Under the pieces are notes generated by a model. It had not been told where the DNA came from. It saw only the letters and a program-made list of their open reading frames with translations, and searched no databases. The position numbers were made by a program, and so were the translations under genes. This document shows, piece after piece, positions 1,449 to 37,156 of a DNA stretch of 64,000 nucleotides. Numbering within the stretch: the first letter of the stretch is position 1; each line of letters opens with the position of its first letter. The stretch covers positions 206,384 to 270,383 of the IMG/VR virus record IMGVR_UViG_3300022744_000020. One strand, written 5' to 3'.

Positions 1449-1451
1449 TTC

Positions 1452-2546
1452 TTAAGCCTGCTGGGCAGTTCCGTATTGGAGGGTGGCTCTGGTATTCCAC
1501 GCCATAGACGCGTTGGTCATGGTCGGGTTGTTGATGGGTCCGGCGTAGTCGAACAAAACCCCTTCTCCGACGCTAGAAGCTCTGGCAACGCACCACGGAA
1601 TGCGTGTGGTGGGACCCCCGATCTTCAGAGCGTACGTGATACCTGGGGTTTCGTCATTACTGATCGTAGTAACCAACCCATCTAACGGAGAATGGTAATG
1701 TGTCTTAAGTCCGGTATCTAAGGCCACCAACTTCTGATTAATTAGCTCTATATCTGCCAAATCAAAACCCAACTCTACTTTGGAGATGGGTCGAAACTTC
1801 TTTGTGATTGGTTTGGAGTGATCTGCTGTCGGAGGAAGTTCACCGTTCTTTACGGCCCAACCAGTAAAGAAATTCTTGTTTGAAGCAGCCGAGTTGCAAT
1901 GGGCATTGATCACATACCGATTGAAATAGATGGCCGAGCCCCAATCAATCGCAAGCACCAACTTTCCGTTTACAAACCCACCAGACAACCCTGCGGGCTC
2001 CAGAGTTCCCCGACTAATATAGCTGGGATTATAGAGTAGGTTTATCCCGAGTGGATCGGCGTAGGTGTAGAAAGAAATGGACAGGTCAGTGAACCCCCCG
2101 GGACCGTACGGGTAGCCAATCAAATCCAGACGAACCATAACGGCACTATTGACCGGAATGTTGGTTTCAATGTACTGGTATCTTTGAACTTCGGCACCAG
2201 CAAATTGAACAACTCCTGGAAATAATCCAGTGTCTCCAGGCTTTACTACGCTCGACAACAAATTGGCTAAACTGATGGTAACGACACTTCCATCTGATTT
2301 TGTCAGGGTTAGAGTTTGGTCAGTTGGAACATATGCTCCGGAAGCGATGGTCGGACCAGTCCCAGCCGGCGCTGTCGTCCCTGAGCCTGCTGCGGGTGCA
2401 GAAGTTGCTGTTCCAAACAAGTGGACAACATCACTGTATTTAATCTTGGCTAGATTGCCATTAACCAACACAACGGCATAATCGTCAGCCGTTATGTCGG
2501 TAAGGGTAGATGTTCTTTCGAACATCGATTTGAAAGCGTCGCTCAT
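1452..2546 (-). CDS. Putative tail fibre / virion protein
   Basis: Thr/Gly/Ala linker, LTLTKSDGSVVTISL fibre-like segment, beta-rich C-terminus; minus-strand structural cluster. Confidence 0.55.
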   Translation of the reverse strand: MSDAFKSMFERTSTLTDITADDYAVVLVNGNLAKIKYSDVVHLFGTATSAPAAGSGTTAPAGTGPTIASGAYVPTDQTLTLTKSDGSVVTISLANLLSSVVKPGDTGLFPGVVQFAGAEVQRYQYIETNIPVNSAVMVRLDLIGYPYGPGGFTDLSISFYTYADPLGINLLYNPSYISRGTLEPAGLSGGFVNGKLVLAIDWGSAIYFNRYVINAHCNSAASNKNFFTGWAVKNGELPPTADHSKPITKKFRPISKVELGFDLADIELINQKLVALDTGLKTHYHSPLDGLVTTISNDETPGITYALKIGGPTTRIPWCVARASSVGEGVLFDYAGPINNPTMTNASMAWNTRATLQYGTAQQA

Positions 2547-2630
2547 TCGAGTGATCCTCTTCTAAAGTAGAATAAAAAGTCTGAATCATACCGTTGGTAT
2601 TTTTATTTAGCTTGAAATTTTTTAAAGCGA

Positions 2631-2638
2631 TACATCAT
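2631..2638 (+). promoter_or_regulatory. phiKZ-type early promoter core (TACATCAT)
   Basis: AT-rich upstream; the same 8-mer family recurs ahead of plus-strand operons. Confidence 0.65.
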
Positions 2639-2674
2639 AACAAAGACCTCCACCACCAAAAGGAATTCATTCTC

Positions 2675-3187
2675 ATGGAAACTCCCAACCTTGTCCAGCG
2701 CGCCACGATCAAAGTGCCTTTGGCTCCTGTCGGTTCTCGACTCAATGAGAGCGTCAATCTGGATTACATGGGTAATGCATACTTCGAGTTTGGTGCTTTG
2801 CCCAAATCGTTGCGCCGGATCGAACAGAAAGCCCATCTCTTTCGCATGAGGCGGCTTGAAGACATCAAGAGCGACACTGGGTTCACCCTGCGCGTGTACA
2901 GTTATCTCAACGACCGGGAGTTCGAACAATACCACAAATGCCTGCGCATGATGCGTGGGTTAGAAAAAGCGAACTTCAACTTAGAGGAGTCTACCCACTT
3001 TGAAGTCATGAAGAATGGAGGATTCTCTTTTGTCTCCGGTACCAACTTCTGGTGGGACATCAGAAACGATGTGATGTGGAGCTTCAACAAGACCTTCATG
3101 TCGCGCTTACCTAAGCAACTCCAAGCGTCGTTCGATTACATGAACGAGAACTCCCCAGAAAACAAACTGCCGAAACTGATCGATTGA
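2675..3187 (+). CDS. Hypothetical protein
   Basis: AAGGA RBS before ATG 2675. Confidence 0.75.
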   Translation: METPNLVQRATIKVPLAPVGSRLNESVNLDYMGNAYFEFGALPKSLRRIEQKAHLFRMRRLEDIKSDTGFTLRVYSYLNDREFEQYHKCLRMMRGLEKANFNLEESTHFEVMKNGGFSFVSGTNFWWDIRNDVMWSFNKTFMSRLPKQLQASFDYMNENSPENKLPKLID

Positions 3188-3459
3188 AATTAAGGAAGAT
3201 GGTTATGTTTGTCTATCACGTCTTTGCTGAAACCCGCGATGGGGAGTTGGATTTCAGTGGATTGATTCATTCCCCAGTGAAGATACTGACTCTTCCAGAT
3301 TTTGAAAACCTGAAGGTAACCCTGGCAGATCGTTTTTGTGAGCACCCTACAGCCATTCGACAAGGAAGGGATCACATTGTCCGCAGCATGCAAATCAAGA
3401 GCCTGAGCTACTTAGGCGAAAAGTCCAACGAACTCACTGAGGAAAAACCAAATGAGTAA
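3184..3459 (+). CDS. Hypothetical protein
   Basis: Overlaps both neighbours in operon fashion. Confidence 0.65.
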   Translation: MKLRKMVMFVYHVFAETRDGELDFSGLIHSPVKILTLPDFENLKVTLADRFCEHPTAIRQGRDHIVRSMQIKSLSYLGEKSNELTEEKPNE

Positions 3460-3895
3460 CGATAAACAAGCAGCACTTCTTCTTGTGCAGGTAGATGATG
3501 GACGCGAGTCCTGCTCGATGTACGAAGAAGCCTACTGGTCCGTCAGTCGGCGACACGGCGACATCAAGCAGGTCGGGTTGGTCTGTGGTAAAGTCGACCC
3601 CGGGGAAACGGCACTGGAGGCAGCCATTCGAGAAGGGAAAGAGGAAATCGGCCTGGAGGTTTCCGAAGAAGACAAGCAAAAGATCGTCGCCATCCACGCC
3701 GGGTGGGATAGCGGTCATTGGGTCACAACCTTCCTCTATCCCGGAAAGATGAAGCTTGCCAATCTCGTCATGGAACCGGGTCTCTTACCCCGAGCAGTCA
3801 CCCTGGACGAAATGTGTCGACCCGAAGTGAGTCCTTTCTGGAATTACAACTTGGGTATTCGTTTGGCCTTGTGGCGATATCGCGGCAGAAAATAA
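3452..3895 (+). CDS. Nudix hydrolase
   Basis: Nudix box GKVDPGETALEAAIREGKEEIGL. Confidence 0.9.
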   Translation: MSNDKQAALLLVQVDDGRESCSMYEEAYWSVSRRHGDIKQVGLVCGKVDPGETALEAAIREGKEEIGLEVSEEDKQKIVAIHAGWDSGHWVTTFLYPGKMKLANLVMEPGLLPRAVTLDEMCRPEVSPFWNYNLGIRLALWRYRGRK

Positions 3896-3912
3896 AGCGT
3901 CTCTGGAAGTAC

Positions 3913-3953
3913 AGCACACACCTATTGGAAGTCAGGTGTGTGCTCGTATTTTT
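3913..3953 (+). terminator. Intrinsic terminator
   Basis: AGCACACACCT/AGGTGTGTGCT stem plus T tract. Confidence 0.7.
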
Positions 3954-4039
3954 ATGTCATTACTTAATTTTTTGGCCCTAACCAACCAGATTGGGAAAGA
4001 GGAATGTAAATCGAGACGCATTCCAGGTTTTTACAACCG

Positions 4040-4047
4040 TATATAAC
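4040..4047 (+). promoter_or_regulatory. Early promoter core (TATATAAC)
   Basis: Variant of the recurring motif. Confidence 0.55.
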
Positions 4048-4105
4048 TCTCATGAATCAAGTACGACTGTCGTGTTTGAACAACTCCCGAGAAAGGGAAT
4101 TAAAC

Positions 4106-4420
4106 ATGGAAAAGAAAGAAATTACCTATTTGGTCTACGCCCAAATAGGTGGAGGTTGGTCGCGACAGCCGCGATACATCCCCACCTCCACACGAAGCGA
4201 TATGGTCGCTTCTTGGTGCCTGGTCTTTGGACCGGACACCGCCCGGTTGAATCCGGAGGGGGATGTAGAGGTGGAGACCAACAAGGTCTTCCAAGTTGCC
4301 GACTATGTCGGCTTGACCAATCTGCTCGGTGAAGCAGATTGGCACCCCAGGACCAAAGTAGGTCTGGGGAACTTCATCGAAAGCTTGATCAGCTTATCGG
4401 TGCGCGGCATCTCGCCATAA
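4106..4420 (+). CDS. Hypothetical protein
   Basis: AAAGGGA RBS before ATG 4106. Confidence 0.7.
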   Translation: MEKKEITYLVYAQIGGGWSRQPRYIPTSTRSDMVASWCLVFGPDTARLNPEGDVEVETNKVFQVADYVGLTNLLGEADWHPRTKVGLGNFIESLISLSVRGISP

Positions 4421-4462
4421 ACGAGAGCCAAAGGTTTTGTCGGGCTACCTTAAAGCCCGACA

Positions 4463-4843
4463 ATGAATTCTGAGGAGTTGGCAATGAAGAAGAATGGTGT
4501 TGTATTCAATCGAAAGATGTTGAAGTGGGGCCGACAGATCGCCCAATGGGCCGTTCGCGGTCTCAATTTCCAGGACAAAGAGACTTATCGGTCCCTGGGG
4601 CAGGAGATCCTCAATGACCCCAAGCTTGCCGAACGTCTGGGACGTGTGCTGAAAGGCATCACGACTGTGACCCAGACAGAAGCTGCAATGCTTCTTCAGG
4701 CTACCGTGGGTCGAATGGATCCCGAGTGGTTCAACGATTACGTTACGGAGACCGAGGAGAAGAACTTCTCTCGCTGGGAATTCAACCACCGCAACATGGT
4801 GGCCGACGCCGTGTGGGTTCTTCAACCCAGCGTCGTGCACTGA
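4463..4843 (+). CDS. Hypothetical protein
   Basis: ORF followed by hairpin and T tract. Confidence 0.7.
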   Translation: MNSEELAMKKNGVVFNRKMLKWGRQIAQWAVRGLNFQDKETYRSLGQEILNDPKLAERLGRVLKGITTVTQTEAAMLLQATVGRMDPEWFNDYVTETEEKNFSRWEFNHRNMVADAVWVLQPSVVH

Positions 4844-4917
4844 CACTCGCGCGCAGAAGCGGACCTCGAGGGAAACCCCCTCTTGGTCCACAACTCTTTT
4901 TTTTTTGAAGGTTTTCC

Positions 4918-5292
4918 ATGAAGTTACTGATTGATCAAGACCTTTGGTATCGATTTGTCGCTAGTAAGCACGAAGATGAGAAAATCGACGAAGAGGCGAT
5001 TACGGCCAATTTGGATCTCGTAGAGAAGCTAAAAAAGTACAGTTGTTACGTTCATCGTAAAATAACCCCGGAGGTCGTTGAGTTCAGAGTTCTCGCGCAA
5101 AAATGCACCCTGGAGGAATTTGAAATGAATGCACTCCTTACCTATTTAGGGGAGCTTTTTGATCTTCGAGTAGAATACTATCCCCTTGGTGGATTGGGTT
5201 GTGGTATATGCTTGAAGATTACCCATGCCGTTGCTTATTGTTTAGATGATCCAATTCCTGAGGAGAAAACAGATGGAACTATACCACGGTAG
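4918..5292 (+). CDS. Hypothetical protein
   Basis: ORF with RBS. Confidence 0.7.
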   Translation: MKLLIDQDLWYRFVASKHEDEKIDEEAITANLDLVEKLKKYSCYVHRKITPEVVEFRVLAQKCTLEEFEMNALLTYLGELFDLRVEYYPLGGLGCGICLKITHAVAYCLDDPIPEEKTDGTIPR

Positions 5293-5698
5293 CCGCTTTA
5301 TCACCAATCTACTCAAGCCGGGTTTCGAACATACCGGCAAGTTGATCAAGTGGGATCAAACCGAAGACAACACGTGGCTCTATGCCTCTACGTCTCAAGC
5401 TGAAGCCTATCTGAATGCTCTGGCTTCAGCACTGGAAGCCAACCATGGTGCAAATAGAGTCTCGTTTGACTCAGAAGAGATTCGAATCTATTCGAGTGGA
5501 AAAATCACAGAAGAAGAGGTTCGAGGGATTCAGGTTTACGTCTATACTTTGTTGTTGACGCCAGATTGGAGAAAGGTCAACAACAAACACAATGGCTCAG
5601 ACACCGAGTACAAGACAAGGTCTCACGTCAAGCCCATTTCAAATGAAATGATAACAGACCCCGTTGGTAATCGCGTGTTGCGGTTCTTCAACACCTGA
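5273..5698 (+). CDS. Putative virion protein with ADP-ribosyltransferase (Arr-like) fold
   Basis: LYHGS...LKPGF...LYAS...VYVY...TEYKT pattern; GAGGAG RBS; precedes SNF2 helicase. Confidence 0.5.
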   Translation: MELYHGSRFITNLLKPGFEHTGKLIKWDQTEDNTWLYASTSQAEAYLNALASALEANHGANRVSFDSEEIRIYSSGKITEEEVRGIQVYVYTLLLTPDWRKVNNKHNGSDTEYKTRSHVKPISNEMITDPVGNRVLRFFNT

Positions 5699-5742
5699 AA
5701 CCCACCCCCTTAACCGGGGGTTTTTCTTTTTAGGCCAGACCC

Positions 5743-8511
5743 ATGTTTGAAATTTTGAGATCACTTGCTGGTATTCTCGATGTTCGAATCAACCGAAATG
5801 TCGTCACTGTCTCCGGAGTGAAGAAAGCCACAATCGAAGGCGGTATGAAGAAAGTGTTTGGCTCCGATAAGATCGCGGCCCACATTTTCAAAATCAAAAG
5901 CAACTCCTTCTCTTTTCAGGAGTGGTTCCTGCCAGATGTGGCTTTCGCTCTGCAGGAGATTGTCAACTCTCCCAAGTCTTACGCCGATCACAAAAGGACT
6001 TGTAAGCAAATTCTCAATCAGCTTTACGAGAAGACATGGCTCGGTCGGATCAATACTGAAGCACCAAAGCGGCTTGACCGCTCCAAGCTTCGAGACATGG
6101 TCTTCACCCCTTTGGATTTCCAGGAAGAGTTCTTCGACTATTTTGAGAAGAACGTCTACGCGTACAACCTGAAGGGTTTTCTTTTTGCTGGTGCGGCTGG
6201 TTCGGGCAAAGCCCAACCAGACTCGGCACTCGTGAAAATCCCCAACGGATGGAAACCCATAGGGGAGATCAGAACCGGAGATTTAGTGGTCACGCCCGAC
6301 GGAGCGCATGCTGTTGTTTCAGGTGTGTTTCCACAGGGAATGAAAAAAATCTACGAGATTTCCACGGTCGATGGTCGTCGCACTCAAGCGTGCCGTGAAC
6401 ACCTGTGGGAGATCATCATTCCGGATCAGTCGATTTTCCGTGAACCGAAGGTGGTTAACACTCAGGCAGTTCTATCGCTGATCAGTTCCGGGATTCCGGT
6501 CTTTATTCCCACCACCATTTGCTGCTCACCGACCGACATACCTCTCAGTGCAGATCCTGAGAAGTGCTCCCCAAGGGAGTTGATCGAAGCTTCATACGCC
6601 CAGAAAGAAGCCTTCTTTGTCGCTCAAGTGGGTCGAAAATATCGATACCTCAACAATTGGGCTCGAGTAACTGGCCAAGACCGAGAAGATTTCATCGCCC
6701 TCGTCAGGTCTTTTGGCGGGGTGATTGGACCAATCACGGAAGAAATGAGCCCGGACATTCTTCCGTACTACTTCGACTCTCTTGTTGAAATTGAGAACGT
6801 GCTTCTTGCCGAGGATCAATACGCTCGCTGCATCATGGTCGAAGATCCTCGTCATTTGTACGTGACCGATCAATACATCGCCACGCACAATACGTTTACC
6901 TCTTGCGCCCTGGCTCATTGCTCTGGATCCGACAAGATCATCGTTGTTTGCCCGAACAACGCTTTGGATCGGGTTTGGAAAGATTCGGCTCTGACGGTGT
7001 TCAAGCAACCACAATCGGTCTGGATTAGTGACGGGAAAACCCCCTTTACTGGTAAAGAAAGATTCCTGGTATGTCACTATGAATGGCTGAGTAAGCTTCG
7101 AGCCAATCTGGACAAGATTAGCTATCAGCGACTTACCGTCATTCTCGATGAATCGCACAACCTGAATGAGGCAGATAGCGGAAGAACCCAGAAATTCATT
7201 TCCCTGTGCGAGGAAGTGGACGCGGCTGAGGTCATCTGGCTTTCCGGCACTCCCATCAAAGCGCTTTCGACGGAAGCGATTCCCCTGATAAGATGTATCG
7301 ACCCCTTGTTCACCCCGGAGGTGGAAGACATTTTCAAGGCCATCTTCCGAGGAGAAAACAACAAAGCGATTTCGATTCTCAAAAATCGAATCGGTCTGGT
7401 GTCGTTCAAGGTCGCCAAAGATCGTCTGGGTCTGAAAGAGCCACTCTTCACCAATTACAAGGTTGCGTTCCCGGGCGCTGAAGAGTTTACCCTCACCAAG
7501 ATCCGGGAGAAGATGACGGCCTTCATCCAACAGCGAGATGTCTACTATAAGTCTCGAGAAAAGGCCGATCTGGCTTACTACCAGAAAATCTTGGATCAGC
7601 ACGCTGCAAAGCTGACGACTCGTGAAGAAAAGGCGGAATTCGATCAATACGTTCGCAACGCGAACATGATACGCAAAACCCAAGGCATGGGCTGTTCAGA
7701 CGAAATGAAGGCAGCCAACCTCTATGAGCTGCGCAACATCATGCCTGGACTTAGCGCCGAGGATCGCATCAAGTTCAAGGAATCGAAGACGATCTACAAG
7801 TACCTCACCCTGAAGATTCAAGGAGAATGCTTGGGTCAAATTGTTGGGCGTACCCGGATCGCTTGTCATGTTGAGTTGGCCAAACAGATCAAGTATGCTC
7901 CGATCCTTGAGTCGACTGAGAAGAAGACGGTTGTTTTCTCGTCATTCGTGGACGTGCTAAAAGCGGCTGAAGTGGAGCTGCAAGCTCAGCAGTATTCTCC
8001 AATGCTTGTTTACGGAGAAACCACCAGTAAACTGGCCCAGATAGTACAGCAGTTTGGAGAAGACGAATCAGTGAACCCGTTGGTGGCGACCTATGCTTCG
8101 TTGTCTACTGCGGTTCCTTTGATCATGGCCGACACCATGATTCTGATCGATGTGCCTTTCCGAGACTACATCCTTCAGCAAGCCGTGTCTCGAATCCATC
8201 GACTCGGACAGGTCAACGACACACACATCTTCACGATCGTGCTGGATACTGGCAACGAGCCGAACATCTCTACCCGAACGGTGGACATTCTGCGCTGGTC
8301 ACAACAGCAAATCGAATCTATCTTGGGCATCAAGTCTCCTTTTGAAATCAAGGACGGGGAAGAGATCGCACTCGAAGCCATGGAAAGTCTGGATGATATC
8401 GACCTGACGCAAGTGGTCGATCCGTTCTTTGCTGGACTCAAGCAGATGGATCAATTCATCGATCCGGACGTGGTTGAAGTCTCTGTTGAAAACACCTATC
8501 TCTCTTGGTAA
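5743..8511 (+). CDS. SNF2-family (SF2) helicase, intein-containing, phiKZ gp203-like
   Basis: Walker A GAAGSGK|T split by intein, DESH, LSGTP, QAVSRIHRLGQ. Confidence 0.9.
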   Translation: MFEILRSLAGILDVRINRNVVTVSGVKKATIEGGMKKVFGSDKIAAHIFKIKSNSFSFQEWFLPDVAFALQEIVNSPKSYADHKRTCKQILNQLYEKTWLGRINTEAPKRLDRSKLRDMVFTPLDFQEEFFDYFEKNVYAYNLKGFLFAGAAGSGKAQPDSALVKIPNGWKPIGEIRTGDLVVTPDGAHAVVSGVFPQGMKKIYEISTVDGRRTQACREHLWEIIIPDQSIFREPKVVNTQAVLSLISSGIPVFIPTTICCSPTDIPLSADPEKCSPRELIEASYAQKEAFFVAQVGRKYRYLNNWARVTGQDREDFIALVRSFGGVIGPITEEMSPDILPYYFDSLVEIENVLLAEDQYARCIMVEDPRHLYVTDQYIATHNTFTSCALAHCSGSDKIIVVCPNNALDRVWKDSALTVFKQPQSVWISDGKTPFTGKERFLVCHYEWLSKLRANLDKISYQRLTVILDESHNLNEADSGRTQKFISLCEEVDAAEVIWLSGTPIKALSTEAIPLIRCIDPLFTPEVEDIFKAIFRGENNKAISILKNRIGLVSFKVAKDRLGLKEPLFTNYKVAFPGAEEFTLTKIREKMTAFIQQRDVYYKSREKADLAYYQKILDQHAAKLTTREEKAEFDQYVRNANMIRKTQGMGCSDEMKAANLYELRNIMPGLSAEDRIKFKESKTIYKYLTLKIQGECLGQIVGRTRIACHVELAKQIKYAPILESTEKKTVVFSSFVDVLKAAEVELQAQQYSPMLVYGETTSKLAQIVQQFGEDESVNPLVATYASLSTAVPLIMADTMILIDVPFRDYILQQAVSRIHRLGQVNDTHIFTIVLDTGNEPNISTRTVDILRWSQQQIESILGIKSPFEIKDGEEIALEAMESLDDIDLTQVVDPFFAGLKQMDQFIDPDVVEVSVENTYLSW
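6211..6891 (+). mobile_element. Class 3 intein (227 aa), endonuclease region degenerate
   Basis: Starts AQP, block B CREHLW, block F RCIMV, block G YVTDQYIATHN followed by T. Confidence 0.85.
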
Positions 8512-28806: not shown

Positions 28807-29592
28807 ATGATTTCCTTGCAACTCGCTTCAAAGAAAGAAGCTTTTGATTTCTTCCCTGGCTTTGAAGACATCTGGCCCTCCAAATGGAGCGAGCAAGCCA
28901 TGGTCGCTACAACCGACTGGACTCTTGATGAAGCCGATGGAGAGATTTTCTACATTCTTAACGACGGCAAGAAGATTGGAATTACTGGCTGGTGGCCGTT
29001 ATCCGAATCAATGGCCGGGCTTCGCTGGCATGGCGTCATCCCTGAATGCCGAGGTCATGGATTTGGAAAGCAAGCGCTTATTTACCTTACCAATCGTCTT
29101 GCTTCAAACTACAAAAAATTGATCGAAGTCACCATGAGTGATGCACCGATCAAGTTCTTTCGTTCTTTCGGATTCGAAGAAATTACGGACCCGATCTTGA
29201 TTGAATTTACCAAGAAATTGGTAGGGGATTACGGACATCGTTTTTTGGAATTTCGATTGGAGGAGAAGCGGATCTCGTACAAAGACTACGACTATCCGTG
29301 GGATTGTGTCAGCGTGTTTAAGCTGACCACAGAACATTGGGGCCCCTCTTATCGGCTGGATCAATACTGGCGTGGGTTGGGTCCTGGCCAGAATCTTTTT
29401 GTGGAAGTTTCATATTTCAAACTAGGAACTGAGAATAACGACCACAAGGTTTTGGTTCGTGGTGGGGACGCCGGTGGAATGGAGCGTACGTTCCCAGGAC
29501 GGGCGGCAGCAAAAGAGTTCTTTGATAAAATTGTGGAGTTGCCAAGGGTTAACGGAGCAGAACTCAAAGCCCTAGGCTTCACCTACATTTAA
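28807..29592 (+). CDS. GNAT acetyltransferase fused to an unknown domain
   Basis: GVIPECRGHGFGKQAL acetyl-CoA motif; FFRSFGF. Confidence 0.75.
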   Translation: MISLQLASKKEAFDFFPGFEDIWPSKWSEQAMVATTDWTLDEADGEIFYILNDGKKIGITGWWPLSESMAGLRWHGVIPECRGHGFGKQALIYLTNRLASNYKKLIEVTMSDAPIKFFRSFGFEEITDPILIEFTKKLVGDYGHRFLEFRLEEKRISYKDYDYPWDCVSVFKLTTEHWGPSYRLDQYWRGLGPGQNLFVEVSYFKLGTENNDHKVLVRGGDAGGMERTFPGRAAAKEFFDKIVELPRVNGAELKALGFTYI

Positions 29593-29695
29593 GATGGTGT
29601 AGTCACATTCCAAAAATTCATGGTCATATATACTCTCATTGAATCGCAAAGCAATTTCGCATAACGATTCACCCTCCTGAGAAAAAGGAACTTTT

Positions 29696-29977
29696 ATGAC
29701 CATCGTCGTTACCACCTCCGCACACGCTCTTCAGTTCATGACCGACCTCCGGGTCGGTGTGATTGGGTATGCCAAGGCGACCATCTCGGAGGCAATGGAG
29801 GAGCTGGCAGAAGCTGCTCAAATGGGTAATCGAGTTGTTCTCTTCAACGTCGGGGAGGACTCCCTGGTGGAAGGAATCCCCTTCGTCATTGAAACGGATG
29901 CTGAGAAGATCAGCGGCGTCCGACAGGTGTTCATTCGTCCCCAGTCTCTGGCAGATGTTTGGATGATCCTGGAGTAA
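29696..29977 (+). CDS. Hypothetical protein
   Basis: Own promoter (29627), RBS and UUCG terminator. Confidence 0.75.
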   Translation: MTIVVTTSAHALQFMTDLRVGVIGYAKATISEAMEELAEAAQMGNRVVLFNVGEDSLVEGIPFVIETDAEKISGVRQVFIRPQSLADVWMILE

Positions 29978-30034
29978 TCTCTGGGTGGATGGGGCTTCGG
30001 CCCCTCCTTAATTTTTTCTTGGAAGGAAGATCAA

Positions 30035-30460
30035 ATGCACGACGGAAGTATTCCTAGCTGGAAAAATTTCGGCACAGATAGCGTTCAGCGCCGTCCCTCA
30101 AAACCAACCCAGCCCGATCCACTTTACCCCTTTTGCGAGCCGGTGGAAATGGTCATGACTGAGAACGGACCAAGACAGGCTGAAACGGATTTAATGAAAT
30201 TCAAGCGCACCGGTAACGCCCTCTGCGCGGCAAAGCTTTTGTCCGATCAAATACTTCAGGACCTGAAAAAGCCGGAGATCAAAATTCGTCGAGATTATCT
30301 CGAATGGCTTCTGGCCTATTTAGAGGTTGATTGGGACTCGATCATGGAAAGTAACAACCGAGCTACTCGGAATGTGAATGATTTAATGGAGCGAGCCCAA
30401 GAAAACAAAGAAAACCAAAAGCTCGTGGTGGCCAGACTCGCAACCATTAGAAAAGATTAA
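30035..30460 (+). CDS. Hypothetical protein
   Basis: AAGGA RBS. Confidence 0.7.
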   Translation: MHDGSIPSWKNFGTDSVQRRPSKPTQPDPLYPFCEPVEMVMTENGPRQAETDLMKFKRTGNALCAAKLLSDQILQDLKKPEIKIRRDYLEWLLAYLEVDWDSIMESNNRATRNVNDLMERAQENKENQKLVVARLATIRKD

Positions 30461-30465
30461 GATCC

Positions 30466-30473
30466 TATATCAT
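30466..30473 (+). promoter_or_regulatory. Early promoter core (TATATCAT)
   Basis: Recurring motif. Confidence 0.65.
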
Positions 30474-30518
30474 CGATCTGGATAATCCAAATCCAGATCA
30501 ACCAAACCAACCGCCATC

Positions 30519-31391
30519 ATGACCATTCCTACCGTCTACTCCCAAGCCCGCCCGCAGATCTTTACCGAGGAGGAAATCGCACAGATGACTCCCGTCAATC
30601 AACTCGCTTACGCGCGACTGAAAAGACTCAATCCGGAGGAGGAAGCAGGCTTCTTCCGCTGGAGCGCCGGCTCGTTGGCCTTTGATTCCGATGTGGAGAA
30701 CCATCCCTGCTGGGGCCACATCTACGCCAATCGGATCCGTGAATTATTGGTGGGGCTCAAAGATGAGAATCTCTACGTTGAGGTGTTTGACATGGGGGAG
30801 TTCTGGGTCTACAACCTTCAGCTCAACAACCCTCAGCAATGGAAGATTCTCAATCAGGGGGTCTACCACTTTCAGACGGAATACCAGCAAAGTTTTGGCC
30901 ATGTGTCGTCGGACGCAGATACCATGACGGTGATGTACAAATCCCGACCCATGGGCCCGGTTCCGGATCACAGCATCGATGCCTGGTGGATCTCGGACAG
31001 CTTGTTGACCCGCATGGTCGACTACTGGTCGGCCAAGAAGTATTTCCAGCGGCTGGAAACTCAGCAGCACCGATACGAAGTAGCCCCCATTACCCGGCTC
31101 ATTTTGGAGTCGAGCAACGGAGAAAAGAAACTGGTGGACATTTCCGGGCTTGTCGGCATGTTCCATTACGGGGACGAGGGTTCTGTGAGGCTGGCCTTTC
31201 GGTATTTGGACAACCAGAGAGACACTGGCTTGGAGGTGGGTACCAAGGAAGCCGCTGATCGTTACCAGAAGTTCATTTTGGACGAGTTGGCTGCTCAGGG
31301 GGTTCCCGTTCTGAACAACAAGGCACCGGATCTGAAGGCGTTCTATCCCGCTCAAAACTACCGTCGATCTGCCCCGCTAATCCTCAGATAA
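30519..31391 (+). CDS. Hypothetical protein
   Basis: Long ORF between promoter and terminator. Confidence 0.8.
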   Translation: MTIPTVYSQARPQIFTEEEIAQMTPVNQLAYARLKRLNPEEEAGFFRWSAGSLAFDSDVENHPCWGHIYANRIRELLVGLKDENLYVEVFDMGEFWVYNLQLNNPQQWKILNQGVYHFQTEYQQSFGHVSSDADTMTVMYKSRPMGPVPDHSIDAWWISDSLLTRMVDYWSAKKYFQRLETQQHRYEVAPITRLILESSNGEKKLVDISGLVGMFHYGDEGSVRLAFRYLDNQRDTGLEVGTKEAADRYQKFILDELAAQGVPVLNNKAPDLKAFYPAQNYRRSAPLILR

Positions 31392-31422
31392 GCCTCAAAA
31401 ACTGAAGCTTTAAGACAGCTCA

Positions 31423-31474
31423 ATACTGCCCCTTCCTCAAAAAGGAAGGGGCAGTATGCTTTTCTTTTTCTTTT
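31423..31474 (+). terminator. 15-bp hairpin terminator with CAAAA loop
   Basis: Perfect stem plus T tract. Confidence 0.8.
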
Positions 31475-31521
31475 ATTCTCTGCCGGCAAGTAAATTCTCA
31501 AACTTAACCAGGAGTGCATCC

Positions 31522-32112
31522 ATGCAACCCCTTAAGCAATTGATTTTATTGCTGTGTTTTCTGTTCAGCACCAATGCGTTCAGTCACACACCGCAGTGGA
31601 TAACTCACCAAACTAAAGGCCGAGTAAGTCAATCTCTGGCTGTAAAAATTGTCTCTTTTGTGCATGCCTACTCACTCAAGCGGGATCTAGATCCTGACTT
31701 GGTGTTTCGGTTCATCACGGTGGAGTCAGGGTTTCGATACAATGCATTATCCAAAGCCAACGCTCGTGGATATATGCAAGTAGTACCACAGTACCACCCT
31801 GAAAAAATAAGAGGTCGCAACCTCTTTGATCTCGAAACCAACATTGAAGTTGGGACGGCAGTGTTTCAAGAATATCTACTCAAGTATGGTGACGTTGATA
31901 AAGCCATTCGCGCTTATCAAGGAAATCATCGCAGTGATGTCTACTTGAACAAAATTCGAGCAGTCAAGTTTATTGACTATCCGAATTACTACCCCAACAC
32001 ATCCCTCATTCCTGTCGAGTCGAATGCTGTAGATTTTAATGAACCTACATCATCAATTTGCGACGAGTTAGATCACTACGCTTGCATGCCTGACGAATTG
32101 CGTCGGCCATAA
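31522..32112 (+). CDS. Secreted lytic transglycosylase (SLT)
   Basis: Signal peptide; ITVESGF, GYMQV, NIEVGT, AYQG. Confidence 0.85.
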   Translation: MQPLKQLILLLCFLFSTNAFSHTPQWITHQTKGRVSQSLAVKIVSFVHAYSLKRDLDPDLVFRFITVESGFRYNALSKANARGYMQVVPQYHPEKIRGRNLFDLETNIEVGTAVFQEYLLKYGDVDKAIRAYQGNHRSDVYLNKIRAVKFIDYPNYYPNTSLIPVESNAVDFNEPTSSICDELDHYACMPDELRRP

Positions 32113-32180
32113 GCTTTTGATCTCTGCTCTGACGCAAATGTAAAACTCTTCATGCGCTAAGCGCAGAAAGAAATAGCCCC

Positions 32181-32720
32181 GTGATCAAATCACTCAAATG
32201 GGTCTTGATGACCCTGATTTTAAGTCTTTCGATTCCCTGCTTCCCGATGTCGGTGCAGTGGATTCAGTATGCGTCGTCAAACCGCATCGATCCCATCCGG
32301 GCAGTTTACCTCAAAGACATGATTGCCAGGATCGCCAAAGAGAAAGGCGTGCCGGTAAAGCTGGCGCATCAACTGATCTCTACCGAATCTGCATACATTG
32401 CCCGAGCCAAGCACGGCCCAGCAGTAGGAATGACCCAGGTCATTCCTAGGTTCCATCAAGATCGATTCTTGACTGGAAACTATTACAACGAGGAAAACAA
32501 CGTCCGAGCCGGGTTGGATTATTTGGCAGAGTGTTTGGAAGATGCTCACGGTAATCAGGCGGTCGCTCTGGCTCTGTACAACCGAGGACCGCATCGATAC
32601 GCATACGCCAGCAAAGTCCTTCGGGTGAACTTCAAGATACCAGCTTCATTCCATCGCTCTCAAGCAAAGAAACAATTGTATGCGAGCCGCGACGTGAGTC
32701 GACCACGGAGCAAGGGATAA
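32181..32720 (+). CDS. Secreted lytic transglycosylase (SLT), paralogue of upstream gene
   Basis: Signal peptide; ISTESAY, GMTQV, NVRAGLDYL, LYNRG. Confidence 0.85.
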   Translation: MIKSLKWVLMTLILSLSIPCFPMSVQWIQYASSNRIDPIRAVYLKDMIARIAKEKGVPVKLAHQLISTESAYIARAKHGPAVGMTQVIPRFHQDRFLTGNYYNEENNVRAGLDYLAECLEDAHGNQAVALALYNRGPHRYAYASKVLRVNFKIPASFHRSQAKKQLYASRDVSRPRSKG

Positions 32721-32769
32721 CTCCGATCATCTTGCTCTGACCGCTTGGTATCTCAACCTTGCTAAATCA

Positions 32770-33005
32770 GTGTACTCTTCTGTTATCGAGAGTAATCGTG
32801 ACGGGTGAAGACTGGGCTCGCCGGCCCCTCAAGTCGTGTCCTGTAACCCATGATCTGCTTTGAAATGAGTAGCACGGCAATTGTTCGGGATAGCCCCACC
32901 CAAGCCCAAACGCCATCGAGGTGAATGGACTAAGATAAGTAAACTCAGTGGGGCTCTTACGGTTGTATGCACGCACGCGACAACTCGTGAATTTACAGAG
33001 TGCGC
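32770..33005 (+). ncRNA. Candidate ~235-nt structured ncRNA
   Basis: Closing helix GTGTACTCT/AGAGTGCGC with nested helices, followed by a GAAA hairpin and T run. Confidence 0.55.
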
Positions 33006-33090
33006 AAATAAGAAATTATTTGTTTTGCACATCTGTTGCGTGAAGACGTCGAGTGATGTTCTTCTAGGGTGCACGTTTTGGAGGCGGATC

Positions 33091-33315
33091 ATGGAAAGAT
33101 TCGAGGTATGGATTTCAACATTCTGGGGAATGGGGCAGATCCAGCGTTCTCGACGGGTGTACGTCTGTCAGGCTAAGACTTTTGACGAGGCGTGCTCAAA
33201 ATTTGTCGAAAGATACCCCGAGTACCGAGAAGGTTGGAAGCCAGAGTCGCGACAAATTGGCTGGGATCAAAAGCTTTTCCCTTCCAAGAAAGAAGCAGAC
33301 GCGTACTTGAGATAA
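33091..33315 (+). CDS. Small hypothetical protein
   Basis: GGAGG RBS before ATG 33091. Confidence 0.7.
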   Translation: MERFEVWISTFWGMGQIQRSRRVYVCQAKTFDEACSKFVERYPEYREGWKPESRQIGWDQKLFPSKKEADAYLR

Positions 33316-33325
33316 GGGATTTTCA

Positions 33326-33413
33326 GGGTCCTGTCCCAACACCGGCCTTCTAAGCCGGCGACATAAAACGGTTGGACGGAAGTCAAGAAGTTCGATTCTT
33401 CCAGGACCCCCCA
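33326..33413 (+). tRNA. Atypical tRNA-Arg(UCU)-like RNA, 8/4 fold, no canonical D-arm
   Basis: GGGTCCTG/CAGGACCC acceptor, CCGGC-CTTCTAA-GCCGG anticodon arm, GAAG-TTCGATT-CTTC T arm, encoded CCA. Confidence 0.75.
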
Positions 33414-33422
33414 AGTCACCTG

Positions 33423-33479
33423 TCATACATTCACTCCAGAGTCCAAAAGACTCTGGAGTGAATGTATGATGCTTTTTTT
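33423..33479 (+). terminator. 21-bp hairpin terminator with CAAAA loop
   Basis: Perfect stem plus T tract. Confidence 0.8.
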
Positions 33480-33524
33480 ATGCCGATCTAAAATAGGGTA
33501 CAACCTCCTTGGAGAAATAGAAGC

Positions 33525-33992
33525 ATGCCTGATAACCACACTCAGCTCTGGACCAGTATTCGCCCCGGTCAAAAATGGCATTTCACTTTGCTGGCGATCG
33601 TTCCGAACCATTGGCTATCGAAATCGGGCCCGAGCATAAAGGAGAGAATTCAGCAGAATCCAGAATGCCTGAAAGAGATCCAGCGATTCACTGAAGACGG
33701 AAAAACTCTCTTTCATGGCGGTACCATGTTTGAGCTTAAAGCCACACATGGAGTTCCGCTCGATTTTCTGTTGGATAAAATTGTCAACGAGTTTGGCTTT
33801 GCTGTCAGTTGGATCGATTTCATTGAACAGTCGCGCAAGAATGGGAGATGGGATTTCCAGACCATCAAAGAGATTGATTACGGCCTCAAGGACGCAATGA
33901 TCGATCGACAGTACGCCGAAGGAATTCTGATCCGATGTAAGATCTACATGACACAAGTCGCTCACCCGCTTTTGAAGGAACAAACCAAATGA
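33525..33992 (+). CDS. Alanyl-tRNA synthetase helical-domain-like small protein
   Basis: GGTMFELKATHGVPLDF resembles AlaRS GxxAFxLYDTYGFPxD. Confidence 0.55.
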   Translation: MPDNHTQLWTSIRPGQKWHFTLLAIVPNHWLSKSGPSIKERIQQNPECLKEIQRFTEDGKTLFHGGTMFELKATHGVPLDFLLDKIVNEFGFAVSWIDFIEQSRKNGRWDFQTIKEIDYGLKDAMIDRQYAEGILIRCKIYMTQVAHPLLKEQTK

Positions 33993-34210
33993 AATACAAC
34001 CAACTCAACATTGGTCCAGCTTTTTACTATCCAGACGAATTGGAGCGGTTAGAGGTATCTGTGGAAGTATCCCAACCGAACAAGGGAAAAGTTTGGGTCA
34101 AGGCTCGCCCTTTAAGTTGTTCCAATAACGCTTCCTTCCTGCATCGCCTCAAGATGGCTTGGGAAGTTTTTCGTGGTAAATCCGACGTTCTTCGCTGGAG
34201 AGGTCAATGA
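33989..34210 (+). CDS. Small hypothetical protein
   Basis: WVKARP...RLKMAWEVFRGKSDVLRW; ATGA overlap. Confidence 0.75.
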   Translation: MKYNQLNIGPAFYYPDELERLEVSVEVSQPNKGKVWVKARPLSCSNNASFLHRLKMAWEVFRGKSDVLRWRGQ

Positions 34211-34761
34211 CTCAACCGATTCTTTTCGAGCAAATCCCTACGACTTCAATTAAGGACCTAATAAAGTTCTTTGATGAAAATGAACGGGAGTCTCTTAAGT
34301 CGATAAGTGCTTTTGATTTTGAATCCCAGTTACTTCAGATCTACTGCTTCAAACCTGATGATCCGGTTAATACCTATAGACTTTTCTTTGTTTTAGCTTA
34401 CTACCGCGAGTTTTGTGTGAATCCGGCAGAGTGCCGACCATTCGCAAAACTTCCGAACGGGGAAGTTTGTGAGATCGATGTCTCACTACTGGGGATAAGG
34501 ATTAGGCCAATCACCACCACCCTGAAGTACATGGTCGTGGATCGGGACCAACTTAACGTCCCGAGTAGGTATGGATTGCCCGCTATCGCCTTTGATGAAG
34601 TCGCCTGGTATCTCGGAAGTGGTCCTTTTGATGCAGAAGCAAACCCCACGATAGTTGAGCAGGTTCACACAGCTACAAAAGCTCGACTTCAAAAGTTCCC
34701 AGAAGAAGATTTCTTCGGTAAGGCACCTCACCCAAAAGTAAAGAATCGCAAAAAGTCCTGA
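34207..34761 (+). CDS. Hypothetical protein
   Basis: ATGA overlap. Confidence 0.7.
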   Translation: MTQPILFEQIPTTSIKDLIKFFDENERESLKSISAFDFESQLLQIYCFKPDDPVNTYRLFFVLAYYREFCVNPAECRPFAKLPNGEVCEIDVSLLGIRIRPITTTLKYMVVDRDQLNVPSRYGLPAIAFDEVAWYLGSGPFDAEANPTIVEQVHTATKARLQKFPEEDFFGKAPHPKVKNRKKS

Positions 34762-34764
34762 GCA

Positions 34765-34772
34765 TATATTAC
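34765..34772 (+). promoter_or_regulatory. Early promoter core (TATATTAC)
   Basis: Exact phiKZ early-promoter consensus. Confidence 0.75.
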
Positions 34773-34829
34773 CAAGGACTAAAGTAATCTTTGCTTAGTA
34801 ACGAAACCACAACGATTGGAAAATCGATA

Positions 34830-35291
34830 ATGTCCGATACTGAAAAGCTCGCACTCATTTCCCCGGCACCTTGGCCGTATTTCGGTCTCGTTGACGGTGT
34901 GACTAAATATCAAGAAGACCGAGAGCATAATCCGGAAGCCTTGCTCACAATGAAGATGAACGAGGAAACTCTTTCTGGTATGTTGGGCTATCTGCTCTCC
35001 GTCAAACAGTCTAATCGGGAACTCACGGCCCAGCGACAAGCGGTTGCCAACGAACTCGATTTCGCAAAAGGAGGGGATTTAACCCAACTAGCTTTAGCTG
35101 TTAGAAAACTAAACGGCGACCTCTTTGATAAGCACGGAGAATGGGCGCTCGAAAGAAGGCGAGCTGAAGAACTTCAAGGACAACTGAGTAAAGAGACTGC
35201 CAGAACTAAAGAGCTAGAAGAAAAATGTGCACGACTCGAGAAAATCAACGAGCGGCAACAAATCGCATTGCTTAATTTCTTAGGGGCTTAA
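34830..35291 (+). CDS. Hypothetical coiled-coil protein
   Basis: Heptad-rich. Confidence 0.7.
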   Translation: MSDTEKLALISPAPWPYFGLVDGVTKYQEDREHNPEALLTMKMNEETLSGMLGYLLSVKQSNRELTAQRQAVANELDFAKGGDLTQLALAVRKLNGDLFDKHGEWALERRRAEELQGQLSKETARTKELEEKCARLEKINERQQIALLNFLGA

Positions 35292-35338
35292 GACGACCTA
35301 AACCGTCCAGCTCAACAACCAACGTAGGAGTAACTCCC

Positions 35339-36052
35339 ATGGCATTAGATCTTCAAAATCCCGTCAGCGAAACCCAATTCATCGAGAGTCAGCAAGAAAA
35401 ATACGTCTTGGTCGACGAGGCGGCTCGCACTCAACTCAGCGAGACCATCAAGGCTATCGTCCTGCAAAATAGCAGCGAGTTCAACGCCGTTGTGGCGTGG
35501 TACTGCAAGTGCGTGGAGCAGTTCATGGGGCCGTTTGCCGAATGGCAAAAGCCAACAGTTCACGCCAGTGCCATTGCCTACGGAAACGAAAGCGATACCC
35601 ACTTTCGTTTCGACATCTACCTGGGTTGTCTTTGGAAGAACGTCCGTCAGTTCGAGAACAACCCTGCAGCAACACGCAATCCGATTGCTCCTTTTGGGCT
35701 GGATACGGATCGCAGTTTGCCCATTGTGGATGAGGTGACTCGTCAGTTACTCGCCGCTCTGGCTTCAGAGTTCCTCCTGGTACCGACTTCTCGTGCCAGG
35801 CTCGGTAAATTCGGCTCTTTCAGCGAAGGGTCTCCGGAATGCGTCTATAAGCCAAATGGAAACATGATGGTTGGATTTTCCGTGATCTACAGTGTCACCG
35901 ATTTGGTATGCGTCAATACCCGGATGCGCGGAATGGAAGGTAAGACTCCGTCGGCACTGTACGTGTTTTCTCGCATCTCCCCAAGGGTCATCGATGGGAC
36001 ACTCAAGCTGGCAGTGCAGCGAGTGATGAATATCGACGGCTCGATGATCTGA
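35339..36052 (+). CDS. Hypothetical protein
   Basis: AGGAG RBS. Confidence 0.8.
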   Translation: MALDLQNPVSETQFIESQQEKYVLVDEAARTQLSETIKAIVLQNSSEFNAVVAWYCKCVEQFMGPFAEWQKPTVHASAIAYGNESDTHFRFDIYLGCLWKNVRQFENNPAATRNPIAPFGLDTDRSLPIVDEVTRQLLAALASEFLLVPTSRARLGKFGSFSEGSPECVYKPNGNMMVGFSVIYSVTDLVCVNTRMRGMEGKTPSALYVFSRISPRVIDGTLKLAVQRVMNIDGSMI

Positions 36053-36073
36053 ATCAGGTCAAAAGGAAAAGAA

Positions 36074-36661
36074 ATGGCAATCGACACCATTCCGGAGATG
36101 AAGGACCAATCTCTCGACGTGACAATCGAGGCGAATCGGTTTGCGCGGTACATGGTCTATCTCCAGGACTTATTTGCTTCTCCAAAGGCAGGTAATAAAG
36201 AGCCCGCTGAAGTTACGGTTGTGCTCAATGAAGATCGACCCCGCTACCTGGTAAAGTTTTACTGTCGGTATGCCATATCGAGCTACTTCGGTCTGGATTA
36301 CACAGAGTTCATCGATCGCATCCTGAAGAAGAGAACCTACGTCGAGGCAATGGTGATTCCGGCAGGAGTTACGTCGCGCTGGACGCATTGCGCGGAGATC
36401 ATCGTCGGGATACCCTGTAAGGAATATTACCGTGGCTATTTGACCGGGGTTCTTTTCGGGGAGGACAACCCTCTGGCATTCGTTACCGACGAATTCGAAA
36501 TCAAGAATTATTTCTGGCGATATACTCGGGAAACTTTACTGGAGTGGTCGCTTGAAAACGACCAGAAGTCAAGAGGAGTTCAAGAACAATACCAGCTACA
36601 GTGTGCTTTGGATAATAAATTCCGAGCATTTAAAGATCAACTGATTTCCATCGCCAACTGA
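36074..36661 (+). CDS. Hypothetical protein
   Basis: AAGGA RBS. Confidence 0.75.
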   Translation: MAIDTIPEMKDQSLDVTIEANRFARYMVYLQDLFASPKAGNKEPAEVTVVLNEDRPRYLVKFYCRYAISSYFGLDYTEFIDRILKKRTYVEAMVIPAGVTSRWTHCAEIIVGIPCKEYYRGYLTGVLFGEDNPLAFVTDEFEIKNYFWRYTRETLLEWSLENDQKSRGVQEQYQLQCALDNKFRAFKDQLISIAN

Positions 36662-36668
36662 GAACACC

Positions 36669-36878
36669 ATGGCCAAACTGAGTAAAGAAGCAAAAGAAGC
36701 GTTTCTGGAAGAACTGAACCAACTGACCCGCAAACACGGAATTCACATCTGGGGTTGCGGCTGCTGTGGCGGGCCGGCACTGGTAGGTCTGACCGAAAAG
36801 GAAACCAGCCCCGACCACCGGTATCGTTTTGATGACGCTGAAGAAAGCGACGGACATATCGAGTGGGCGGACAAATGA
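36669..36878 (+). CDS. Small hypothetical protein (GCGCCG motif)
   Basis: Operon ORF. Confidence 0.7.
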   Translation: MAKLSKEAKEAFLEELNQLTRKHGIHIWGCGCCGGPALVGLTEKETSPDHRYRFDDAEESDGHIEWADK

Positions 36879-37156
36879 GTCAGGAGCCTGAAAACCAATT
36901 CAGGCTCTCATTTCACTACTTTGGGGTCAAGCTAGTTTTCACGATAGTTAGATCCCTTACTGGTGAGGTGAGCTGCACTATACGTGCTACTTACAGTGGA
37001 GTAAAAGAGCCTGAAGAGTTCGGGCTCAAATTTACCGATAAAGCGCAAAAAGCAGCGCGTGAAAACTGGCCGCTTTACTTGGAGAAGGCAAAGGCCAATG
37101 AGCTAACCTTCTTCTCCTCTCTTTTCGAAAACTCTCAAGAGGTGACACATGGCTGA
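36875..37156 (+). CDS. Hypothetical protein
   Basis: ATGA overlap. Confidence 0.65.
   Translation: MSQEPENQFRLSFHYFGVKLVFTIVRSLTGEVSCTIRATYSGVKEPEEFGLKFTDKAQKAARENWPLYLEKAKANELTFFSSLFENSQEVTHG

Follow-up and report, generated by a model that had tools for sequence, protein, structure and literature searches.

In this study, we examined a tRNA-like element without a D arm, together with its surroundings, in the last 64 kb of the 270,383-bp viral contig IMGVR_UViG_3300022744_000020; this whole 64-kb stretch is called the window here, and positions are counted from its first nucleotide. Four elements stand next to each other at the locus: a non-coding element of about 310 nt, an open reading frame (ORF) of 74 codons (ORF74), the tRNA-like element, and a gene for a 155-aa protein that resembles part of alanyl-tRNA synthetase (AlaRS), hereafter the mini-protein (Table 1). 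A first-pass annotation had read them as one translation-interference locus. Its description of the layout was confirmed, as all four elements are present and adjacent on the + strand, which also carries most of the other window genes, and its two caveats were correct: position 3:70 of the tRNA-like element is G-C and not G-U, and a terminator lies between this element and the mini-protein gene. However, the functional reading did not hold, and the tRNA-like element appears to be the most interesting object here, most likely a tRNA of a new structural type that is widespread among phages and overlooked by standard annotation. The conserved non-coding element, like the mini-protein family, is of modest further interest.

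A tRNA-like RNA class without a D arm

The window copy agrees with a canonical tRNA in its acceptor stem, its 7-nt anticodon loop with U33 and a purine at position 37, its T loop and its 3' CCA, and departs from it in the D arm of the cloverleaf, which is absent; an 8-nt linker sits between the acceptor and anticodon stems. ARAGORN made no call on it in standard, relaxed, mitochondrial or transfer-messenger RNA (tmRNA) mode. Scanning the whole window with Rfam at the gathering score gave no matches; the best Rfam match of the element was tRNA-Sec (27.4 bits versus a gathering score of 47), and a permissive scan of 32600-33600 returned this sub-threshold match, hairpin noise on the terminator and nothing else. 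A tmRNA identity was considered and rejected, as the ARAGORN tmRNA search was negative, the element is contiguous, and its third acceptor pair is G3-C70 rather than G3:U70. Two short sister contigs, L019 and L020, which were reached via ORF74 and the second SLT transglycosylase gene, also carry the element. In L019 the acceptor stem shows a compensatory change from U-A to C-G relative to the window, and in L020 all 88 nt are identical save the discriminator, although the neighboring proteins are only about 73% identical.

Using pattern search and blastn, we found the same architecture in unrelated phages, with seven further copies at six loci that scored 70-91 bits against the covariance model (Table 1). 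The window copy scored 116 bits and carries every feature of the class. Members are 85-88 nt long. The acceptor stem has 8 bp and is followed by an 8-nt linker (N-N-C-C-N-N-C-A), the anticodon stem of 5 bp carries a 7-nt loop, and the variable region measures 25-29 nt; a 4-bp T stem with the loop UUCGAUU or UUCGAAU, the discriminator and an encoded CCA complete the molecule. The CCNNC of the linker pairs with a GNNGG inside the variable region (helix P2), which was seen in five Watson-Crick variants (CCAAC, CCAGC, CCUGC, CCCUC and CCCAC), each with its exact complement, and a conserved GGA comes after P2. A further helix of 3-5 bp (P4) forms between the nucleotides that directly follow the anticodon arm and those that directly precede the T arm, and its versions covary as well (GAC/GUC, UACGU/ACGUG, UAGC/GCUG, UACUU/AAGUG and AGC/GCU). 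Since P2 and P4 cross, the core is a pseudoknot.

Covariation was assessed in an alignment of ten copies from seven phage lineages. Standard pairs occupied 99.5% of the cells, 13 of the 22 pairs had changed on both sides, and 51 cells were compensatory. None of 500 shuffles reached the observed values, and sliding the partners by 1-3 columns left only 38-52% pairing. We conclude that these elements form a genuine class of RNA under selection. Nine copies have the anticodon loop CUUCUAA, and one, from the tandem pair of Aeromonas phage AhSzw-1, has CUCCUAA; the ten copies carry only the anticodons UCU or CCU, the two of the AGA/AGG arginine box. The two AhSzw-1 copies lie 6 nt apart, one with CCU and the other with UCU. 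Three copies (that of Vibrio phage D423 and both of AhSzw-1) have the G3-U70 wobble that serves as the AlaRS identity mark, and six of the ten have G1-U at the first acceptor pair.

A blastn search with one copy matched 343 phage records, comprising 304 of Vibrio, 32 of Acinetobacter, three of Aeromonas, two of Escherichia and one each of Salmonella and Salicola; among the matches listed, the sites were unannotated or bore a spurious "hypothetical protein". ARAGORN and Rfam at the gathering score detected the normal tRNAs nearby and none of these elements, and in the Rfam tRNA clan the window copy and six other copies were all under the gathering score. In phages Kimel and ME3 the element is located among ordinary tRNA genes, and the tRNA cluster of Kimel has no canonical tRNA-Arg, either by annotation or by ARAGORN. 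Window genes use AGA and AGG at 7.1 and 6.2 per 1000 codons, respectively, which is compatible with a supply role of the element and not decisive. Outside phage records, there was no match in the E. coli genome collection. An exact 20-mer of T arm plus acceptor found nothing in genome contigs, although it is a poor pattern because the acceptor stem covaries; in metagenome contigs it hit the source contig and, by chance, one coding gene. A gapped anticodon-arm pattern likewise found none in genome contigs. We found no account of a D-arm-less phage tRNA in the literature; coverage was thin for subscription journals, and an earlier description is possible.

Several other observations were made at the loci of this class. 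Ordinary cloverleaf tRNAs (Gly-UCC and Ser-GCU) returned by a relaxed anticodon pattern in IMG/VR have only the anticodon stem in common with the class and are not members. Genes for tRNA-Gly(UCC) of 86 nt with a long variable arm, unusual for a glycine tRNA, were found in tRNA-rich viral contigs (L022:9295-9380 and L024:104-189). A tRNA with anticodon CUA, called Pyl by ARAGORN and possibly an amber suppressor, is present in L024 and in Kimel. In Kimel, a 29-codon "hypothetical protein" (orf146) in GenBank lies on the opposite strand exactly over the element and is probably spurious, and ARAGORN found a tRNA-Thr(UGU) at L025 2410-2481 that is missing from the record annotation. In ME3 the element is followed by tRNA-Met and tRNA-Leu genes, about 300 nt 3' of which an unannotated stretch (L028:3078-3414) contains a group I intron (Rfam, 81 bits). 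The Vibrio-type contig L021 has a 640-nt ORF-free stretch (5566-6207) 5' of its copy. Another 184 nt of this contig (L021:4906-5089) recur, at 94.6% identity and without annotation, in 26 records of Vibrio anguillarum phages (Her, Cla, pVa-1 and others); the remainder of the 8.8-kb locus is unmatched in those phages, and the 184 nt represent a conserved non-coding island.

Table 1. Features of the locus in the window and class members in other phages
Feature	Position	Strand	Basis or remark
Two SLT transglycosylase genes	31456-32112 and 32181-32720	+	directly 5' of the ORF-poor gap
ORF-poor gap of 370 nt, no credible ORF	32721-33090	+	directly 3' of the SLT genes
Conserved non-coding element, putative structured non-coding RNA or regulatory leader	32721-33034	+	ends in hairpin 33000-33030
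ORF74, 74 codons	33091-33315	+	GGAGG 6 nt 5' of ATG
tRNA-like element, anticodon UCU	33326-33413	+	fold, covariance model
Acceptor stem, 8 bp	33326-33333 with 33402-33409	+	predicted pairing
Helix P2	33336-33340 with 33371-33375	+	pairing of linker and variable region
Anticodon arm, loop CUUCUAA	33342-33358	+	anticodon-type hairpin
Helix P4	33360-33362 with 33382-33384	+	variable-arm stem
T arm, loop UUCGAUU, 4-bp stem	33387-33401	+	canonical T loop
Discriminator and encoded CCA	33410-33413	+	sequence
Intrinsic terminator	33423-33480	+	20-bp stem, then T run
Promoter-like and ribosome-binding region heading the downstream operon; left indel junction	33481-33517	+	conserved in relatives
Variable accessory cassette (AlaRS-like, 73-aa, 184-aa and 166-aa genes)	33518-35326	+	absent from L019
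AlaRS Mid2-like mini-protein gene, 155 aa	33525-33992	+	homology; stop overlaps start of the 73-codon ORF
73-aa protein gene	33989-34210	+	PHROG 21988 match, E 5e-7
166-aa protein gene	34791-35291	+	weak match to Hdf-like anti-restriction PHROG
Class member, 65-kb Vibrio-type viral contig	L021
Class member, T4-like Acinetobacter phage Kimel	L025:2491-2580 (record 75820-75909)
Class member, Acinetobacter jumbo phage ME3	L028
Class member, 114-kb Vibrio phage D423	L029:2491-2577
Class members, two tandem copies, T5-like Aeromonas phage AhSzw-1	L030:2487-2574 and 2581-2665
Class member, Zobellviridae phage

Proposed transcription unit and sister contigs

The non-coding element upstream of ORF74 is conserved far beyond its surroundings. 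Between 32721 and 33026 there were two differences from L019 in 306 nt (99.3% identity), whereas about 18 would be expected at the regional divergence of 5.9%; conservation falls at once downstream, to 87.5% in 33027-33090 and 92% in the adjacent ORF. Its core (32892-32999) is nearly invariant even in L020. The few substitutions in its predicted stems are G-C/G-U exchanges that keep pairing only if the + strand is the RNA, the hairpin at 33000-33030 shows compensatory changes, and a 5-bp hairpin near 32773-32794 is swapped for a different 5-bp hairpin in L020. The fold z-score was -2.07, and no Rfam family matched. The stem substitutions and the hairpin exchange favor a structured RNA across the upstream ~310 nt, although three such closely related sequences fall short of proof. 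When the core was made into a covariance model, this found no counterpart beside the tRNA-like element in other phages; therefore, the upstream element is specific to this phage group and stands outside the tRNA class. The same model gave no support to a likeness, seen by eye, with the ORF-free stretch of L021.

Third codon positions account for most of the differences between ORF74 and its counterparts (11 of 18 for L019 and 18 of 25 for L020), which indicates that it is coding and translated. A 123-nt deletion leaves 34 codons in L020, and thus the C-terminal half is dispensable. The ORF has no Pfam or PADLOC match and no recognizable family, and its only close relatives are on the sister contigs. 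The terminator that closes the ORF74/tRNA unit is 78.6% identical in sequence to that of L019; compensatory changes preserve its hairpin in L019 and L020 alike.

Comparison with the sister contigs showed where the conserved part ends. L019 has 94% nucleotide identity (94.1% overall) to the window, and blastn aligned its positions 1-4615 with window 28897-33517 and its positions 4609-5611 with window 35327-36329. It lacks the 1809 bp in between, with the AlaRS-like gene and the 73-, 184- and 166-codon genes, and continues into a 237-aa gene. L020 is more distant (SLT protein 73% identical) and has a homologue of the 73-codon gene straight after the conserved post-terminator sequence, the AlaRS-like gene alone being absent. 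Both sisters retain the non-coding region, ORF74 (shortened in L020), the tRNA-like element, the terminator and the promoter-like sequence. The post-terminator region (33481-33517) is conserved in all three relatives up to the ribosome-binding site and is then followed by three different first genes; its promoter-like motif is unique within the window. The site after the terminator looks like a hot spot for accessory gene swapping. The 1809-bp indel is flanked by similar ribosome-binding regions, GGAGAAA and GGAGTAA (33481-33517 and 35300-35338).

Regarding other genes nearby, a 290-aa protein just 5' of the tandem SLT genes (30519-31391) has a weak ParE-like toxin match over residues 171-244, at an E value of 0.006 that is under the cut-off. 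The 166-aa protein of the cassette matches its Hdf-like anti-restriction PHROG weakly (E 0.011), and PADLOC gave no matches for the cassette proteins. The region 30000-37000 of the window had no blastn match in the phage database, and IMG/VR scans with ORF74 and the SLT gene returned the source contig alone.

The AlaRS-like mini-protein

The peptide that the first-pass annotation had quoted as similar to the tRNA-recognition region of AlaRS corresponds to residues 65-81 of the mini-protein. Taken alone, the protein had one sub-threshold Pfam match (tRNA-synt_2c, positions 374-424 of 552; 16 bits versus a cut-off of 30.3), no NCBIfam match, and an E value of 0.12 against residues 361-429 of Aquifex AlaRS. 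Nothing in it aligned with the class II catalytic core (motifs 1-3, N-terminal ~250 residues), in line with the earlier remark that catalytic motifs are missing. An exhaustive profile search recovered a family of 226 clusters at E<=1e-3 (120 at E<=1e-10), whose members are almost all 60-200 aa long and have in common a core of about 85 residues (window residues 60-145). PF01411 was matched in the same region by 66 of 83 sampled members (best E 7e-8) and TIGR00344 alaS by 44, and the family profile matched the AlaRS structures of Aquifex (364-429, E 1.9e-4) and E. coli (387-429, E 2.4e-3) and, weakly, that of human (422-464), with no other notable structure matches. Because of these matches to PF01411, TIGR00344 and AlaRS structures, the homology goes beyond chance at the family level. 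That the mini-protein is a true homologue of AlaRS Mid2, a piece of the tRNA-recognition domain, is well supported by such profile comparisons. Foldseek and a wide structural search returned generic helical repeats and no convincing match to the whole domain.

The AlaRS match spans about 60 residues, and the C-terminal three helices are specific to the family. In an AlphaFold2 model, residues 60-155 have pLDDT >96, and an N-terminal extension of about 55 residues, longer than in the relatives, is poorly predicted. Longer family members (184-313 aa) contain no recognizable extra Pfam domain. In E. coli AlaRS, the loop Y399-D400-T401-Y402-G403 occupies the minor groove at G3:U70, where Asp400 recognizes the 2-amino group of G3; replacing this Asp with Ala cuts kcat/Km about 25-fold (PMC6055181). 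This loop aligns with K72-A73-T74-H75-G76 of the mini-protein. G76 is the only invariant residue of the family. Among the 83 members, the column of the G3-reading Asp is occupied by Ala 44 times, by Asp 22 times and by other residues 17 times; the window protein has Ala (A73).

By tblastn, the family was detected in 23 records of jumbo phages that infect Serratia, Dickeya, Klebsiella, Erwinia and Xanthomonas (32-52% identity), and 22 of the 83 members matched PHROG 22967. A few family records are already named "alanyl-tRNA synthetase" on the same domain match. We found no paper that discusses the family, in a search that was thin for subscription journals, so that an earlier description is possible. 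In all phages examined, the gene lies among small early-type accessory genes.

The first-pass annotation had further suggested that the mini-protein would partner the atypical tRNA, and had named gene-neighborhood co-occurrence in other phages as a check. At ten mini-protein loci of other phages, no other gene was common with the window (blastp, E 1e-5), and no tRNA or tRNA-like RNA was found within 4-6 kb by ARAGORN, permissive Rfam or the covariance model, except in Xanthomonas phage XaC1, where three ordinary tRNAs lie 1.6-3.3 kb upstream of the gene. A 76-aa ORF 5' of the mini-protein gene in two of the loci (L004 and L005), considered as a counterpart of ORF74, was unrelated. In the phage database, the host genera of mini-protein carriers and of carriers of the tRNA-like element are disjoint, co-occurrence being judged at blastn/tblastn sensitivity. 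The gene is also missing from the site in both sisters, which keep the RNA unit. From the sisters, the neighborhoods and the host distribution, it appears that the mini-protein gene is a mobile accessory gene that stands beside the tRNA unit in this phage alone. Since no co-occurrence was the outcome by which the annotation itself had proposed to judge the partnership, the partnership is largely refuted. The annotation was therefore partly supported, being half right on the protein and wrong on the functional locus.

Explanations of the locus and comparison with known systems

We consider it fairly probable that three independent things are met side by side here, namely a conserved RNA unit, a separate accessory operon and an incidental adjacency of the two, with the RNA most likely a tRNA-Arg. 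In this explanation, the ~310-nt element, the small protein gene, the non-canonical tRNA and the terminator would be one transcription unit conserved in the phage group. P2 extends the anticodon stem in the way that the D stem would in an ordinary tRNA, and the GGA after P2 probably substitutes for G18-G19 of the D loop at the elbow. The tRNA would be cut from the transcript like other phage tRNAs and, once charged, would decode AGA/AGG for the phage, most likely as tRNA-Arg, because the anticodons of the class are only UCU or CCU; processing, charging and decoding are what we infer. A separate operon would start after the terminator, its first gene in this one phage being the horizontally mobile AlaRS Mid2-like gene, whose product may bind an RNA helix of the acceptor-stem type, with no catalysis and with no strict specificity for G3:U70.

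It seems very improbable that the non-coding RNA, the small ORF, the tRNA-like element and a mini-protein binding or escorting it form one translation-interference module. In this genome the elements do lie side by side in one orientation, the protein shares homology with a subdomain that binds acceptor stems, and loss of the G3-reading Asp would suit the G3-C70 acceptor of the element. However, a strong terminator and a separate promoter-like region separate the RNA unit from the gene, both sisters retain the RNA unit without the gene at the site, the ten other loci have no adjoining tRNA-like RNA (and no neighbors in common), and the host genera of the two elements in the phage database are disjoint. 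The role of the mini-protein itself is a different matter. Its helical domain might have been re-used to bind a protein partner, such as host AlaRS or a different host factor, or for some other accessory role and no longer handle RNA, as suggested by the ~60 residues that alone match AlaRS, the family-specific C-terminal helices, the key Asp lost in most members, the conserved W96, R104 region and W-W-D-F segment without AlaRS counterpart in the alignments, and the constant setting among early-type accessory genes. We regard this as somewhat unlikely, since conservation is highest in precisely the loop with which AlaRS contacts the acceptor stem, its Gly being invariant, and since the Asp is kept in 22 of the 83 members.

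For the RNA, a non-canonical tRNA for AGR codons is the most likely reading of the conserved anatomy, and a tRNA-Arg mimic is the main alternative. The element could be a decoy or inhibitor of a host anticodon nuclease or modification enzyme for tRNA-Arg(UCU/CCU), or a 3'-end processing or stability element of the ORF74 transcript. Such roles would agree with an anticodon loop that is nearly invariant while every stem varies, with the absence of the canonical D arm that many tRNA-handling proteins require, and with the position of the element in the 3' untranslated region of a protein gene in the window. They nevertheless appear unlikely: the encoded CCA, the 12-bp acceptor/T branch, the canonical T loop, U33 and A37 are all conserved, the tandem UCU and CCU copies track a genetic-code box, and in several phages the element lies among ordinary tRNA genes, where a role in a 3' untranslated region is inapplicable. 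As for the 310 nt upstream of ORF74, they may act as DNA (a promoter cluster, operator array, origin or packaging signal), a reading that we take as possible though less favored. Their 99.3% conservation alone fits a DNA or an RNA function equally, and the modest z-score, the absence of an Rfam family and the absence of the element beside the tRNA-like element in other phages suit a DNA role. In contrast, stem substitutions that keep pairing on the + strand only, or are compensatory, and the exchange of one hairpin for another at the same place in L020 argue for RNA.

Returning to the tRNA reading, we tentatively propose, as a real possibility on which we stay somewhat reserved, that hundreds of phages of Vibrio, Acinetobacter, Aeromonas and other hosts, this jumbo phage among them, use a translationally active tRNA dedicated to AGA/AGG, with a pseudoknot of 5' linker and variable-arm loop in place of the D arm, a core topology previously undescribed. 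If it is a true working tRNA, then a D-arm-less tRNA with a pseudoknotted core is acceptable to bacterial ribosomes, EF-Tu, RNase P and a synthetase. To our knowledge, such D-arm-less architecture has been thought limited to animal mitochondria with co-adapted factors. Phage tRNA inventories would also be systematically undercounted, since ARAGORN and Rfam miss every copy. Members with G3-U70 (D423 and the AhSzw-1 copies) might be charged by AlaRS rather than ArgRS, judging from this pair. If instead the element is a mimic, phages would widely carry in it a candidate counter-measure to host factors targeting tRNA-Arg. Both readings can be tested directly in cultured phages (ME3, Kimel, AhSzw-1 and Vibrio crassostreae phages). 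The AlaRS-Mid2 mini-proteins, on the other hand, constitute a sizeable, uncharacterized jumbo-phage family that is currently mislabeled as synthetase, and a stand-alone acceptor-stem reader, if true, would represent a phage factor of a new kind, with tRNA or tmRNA as its target.

Among known systems, the subdomain homologous to the mini-protein is AlaRS Mid2 (E. coli ~385-441; PF01411 ~370-435). Unlike AlaRS, the mini-proteins have no catalytic domain, Mid1, editing domain or C-Ala; they are stand-alone, phage-encoded proteins of 60-200 aa, Asp400 is replaced by Ala in the window protein and 53% of the family, and there are three extra C-terminal helices. Serratia phage Moabite gp235, a protein of phage Totoro, Xanthomonas phage XaC1 gp496 and PHROG 22967 belong to the same family (32-52% core identity). 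The Moabite record note already cites IPR018162 and an HHpred value of 88-89%, so the AlaRS-like domain had been seen by annotators; labels such as "alanyl-tRNA synthetase" or "alanine-tRNA ligase" on these phage proteins are misleading, as the enzyme part is absent.

The tRNA-like element resembles tRNA-Sec and the 8/4 allo-tRNAs, which occur in phages too (Mukai et al., 2017; PMC5389517), in its 8-bp acceptor stem, 4-bp T stem and long variable region. However, tRNA-Sec and allo-tRNAs keep a D arm (with a 6-bp stem in tRNA-Sec), whereas the element has none and pairs its variable region with the 5' linker; its anticodon is UCU or CCU, compared with UCA in tRNA-Sec or the allo-tRNA repertoire. 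Metazoan mitochondrial D-arm-less tRNAs, such as tRNA-Ser(AGN), also have a short linker between acceptor and anticodon stems and read AGN codons. These are 55-65 nt long, have no long variable region and rely on adapted mitochondrial factors. They lack the P2/P4 pseudoknot, in contrast with the phage-encoded class and its 85-88 nt. Finally, the canonical tRNA-Arg(UCU) of T4-type phages, which has the anticodon loop CUUCUAA, lies in tRNA clusters and, like the D-arm-less class, is presumed to read AGA, folds into a cloverleaf, complete with D arm and short variable loop, that ARAGORN and Rfam detect. The D-arm-less class, which both programs miss, has the same anticodon loop and the same cluster setting as this canonical phage tRNA.

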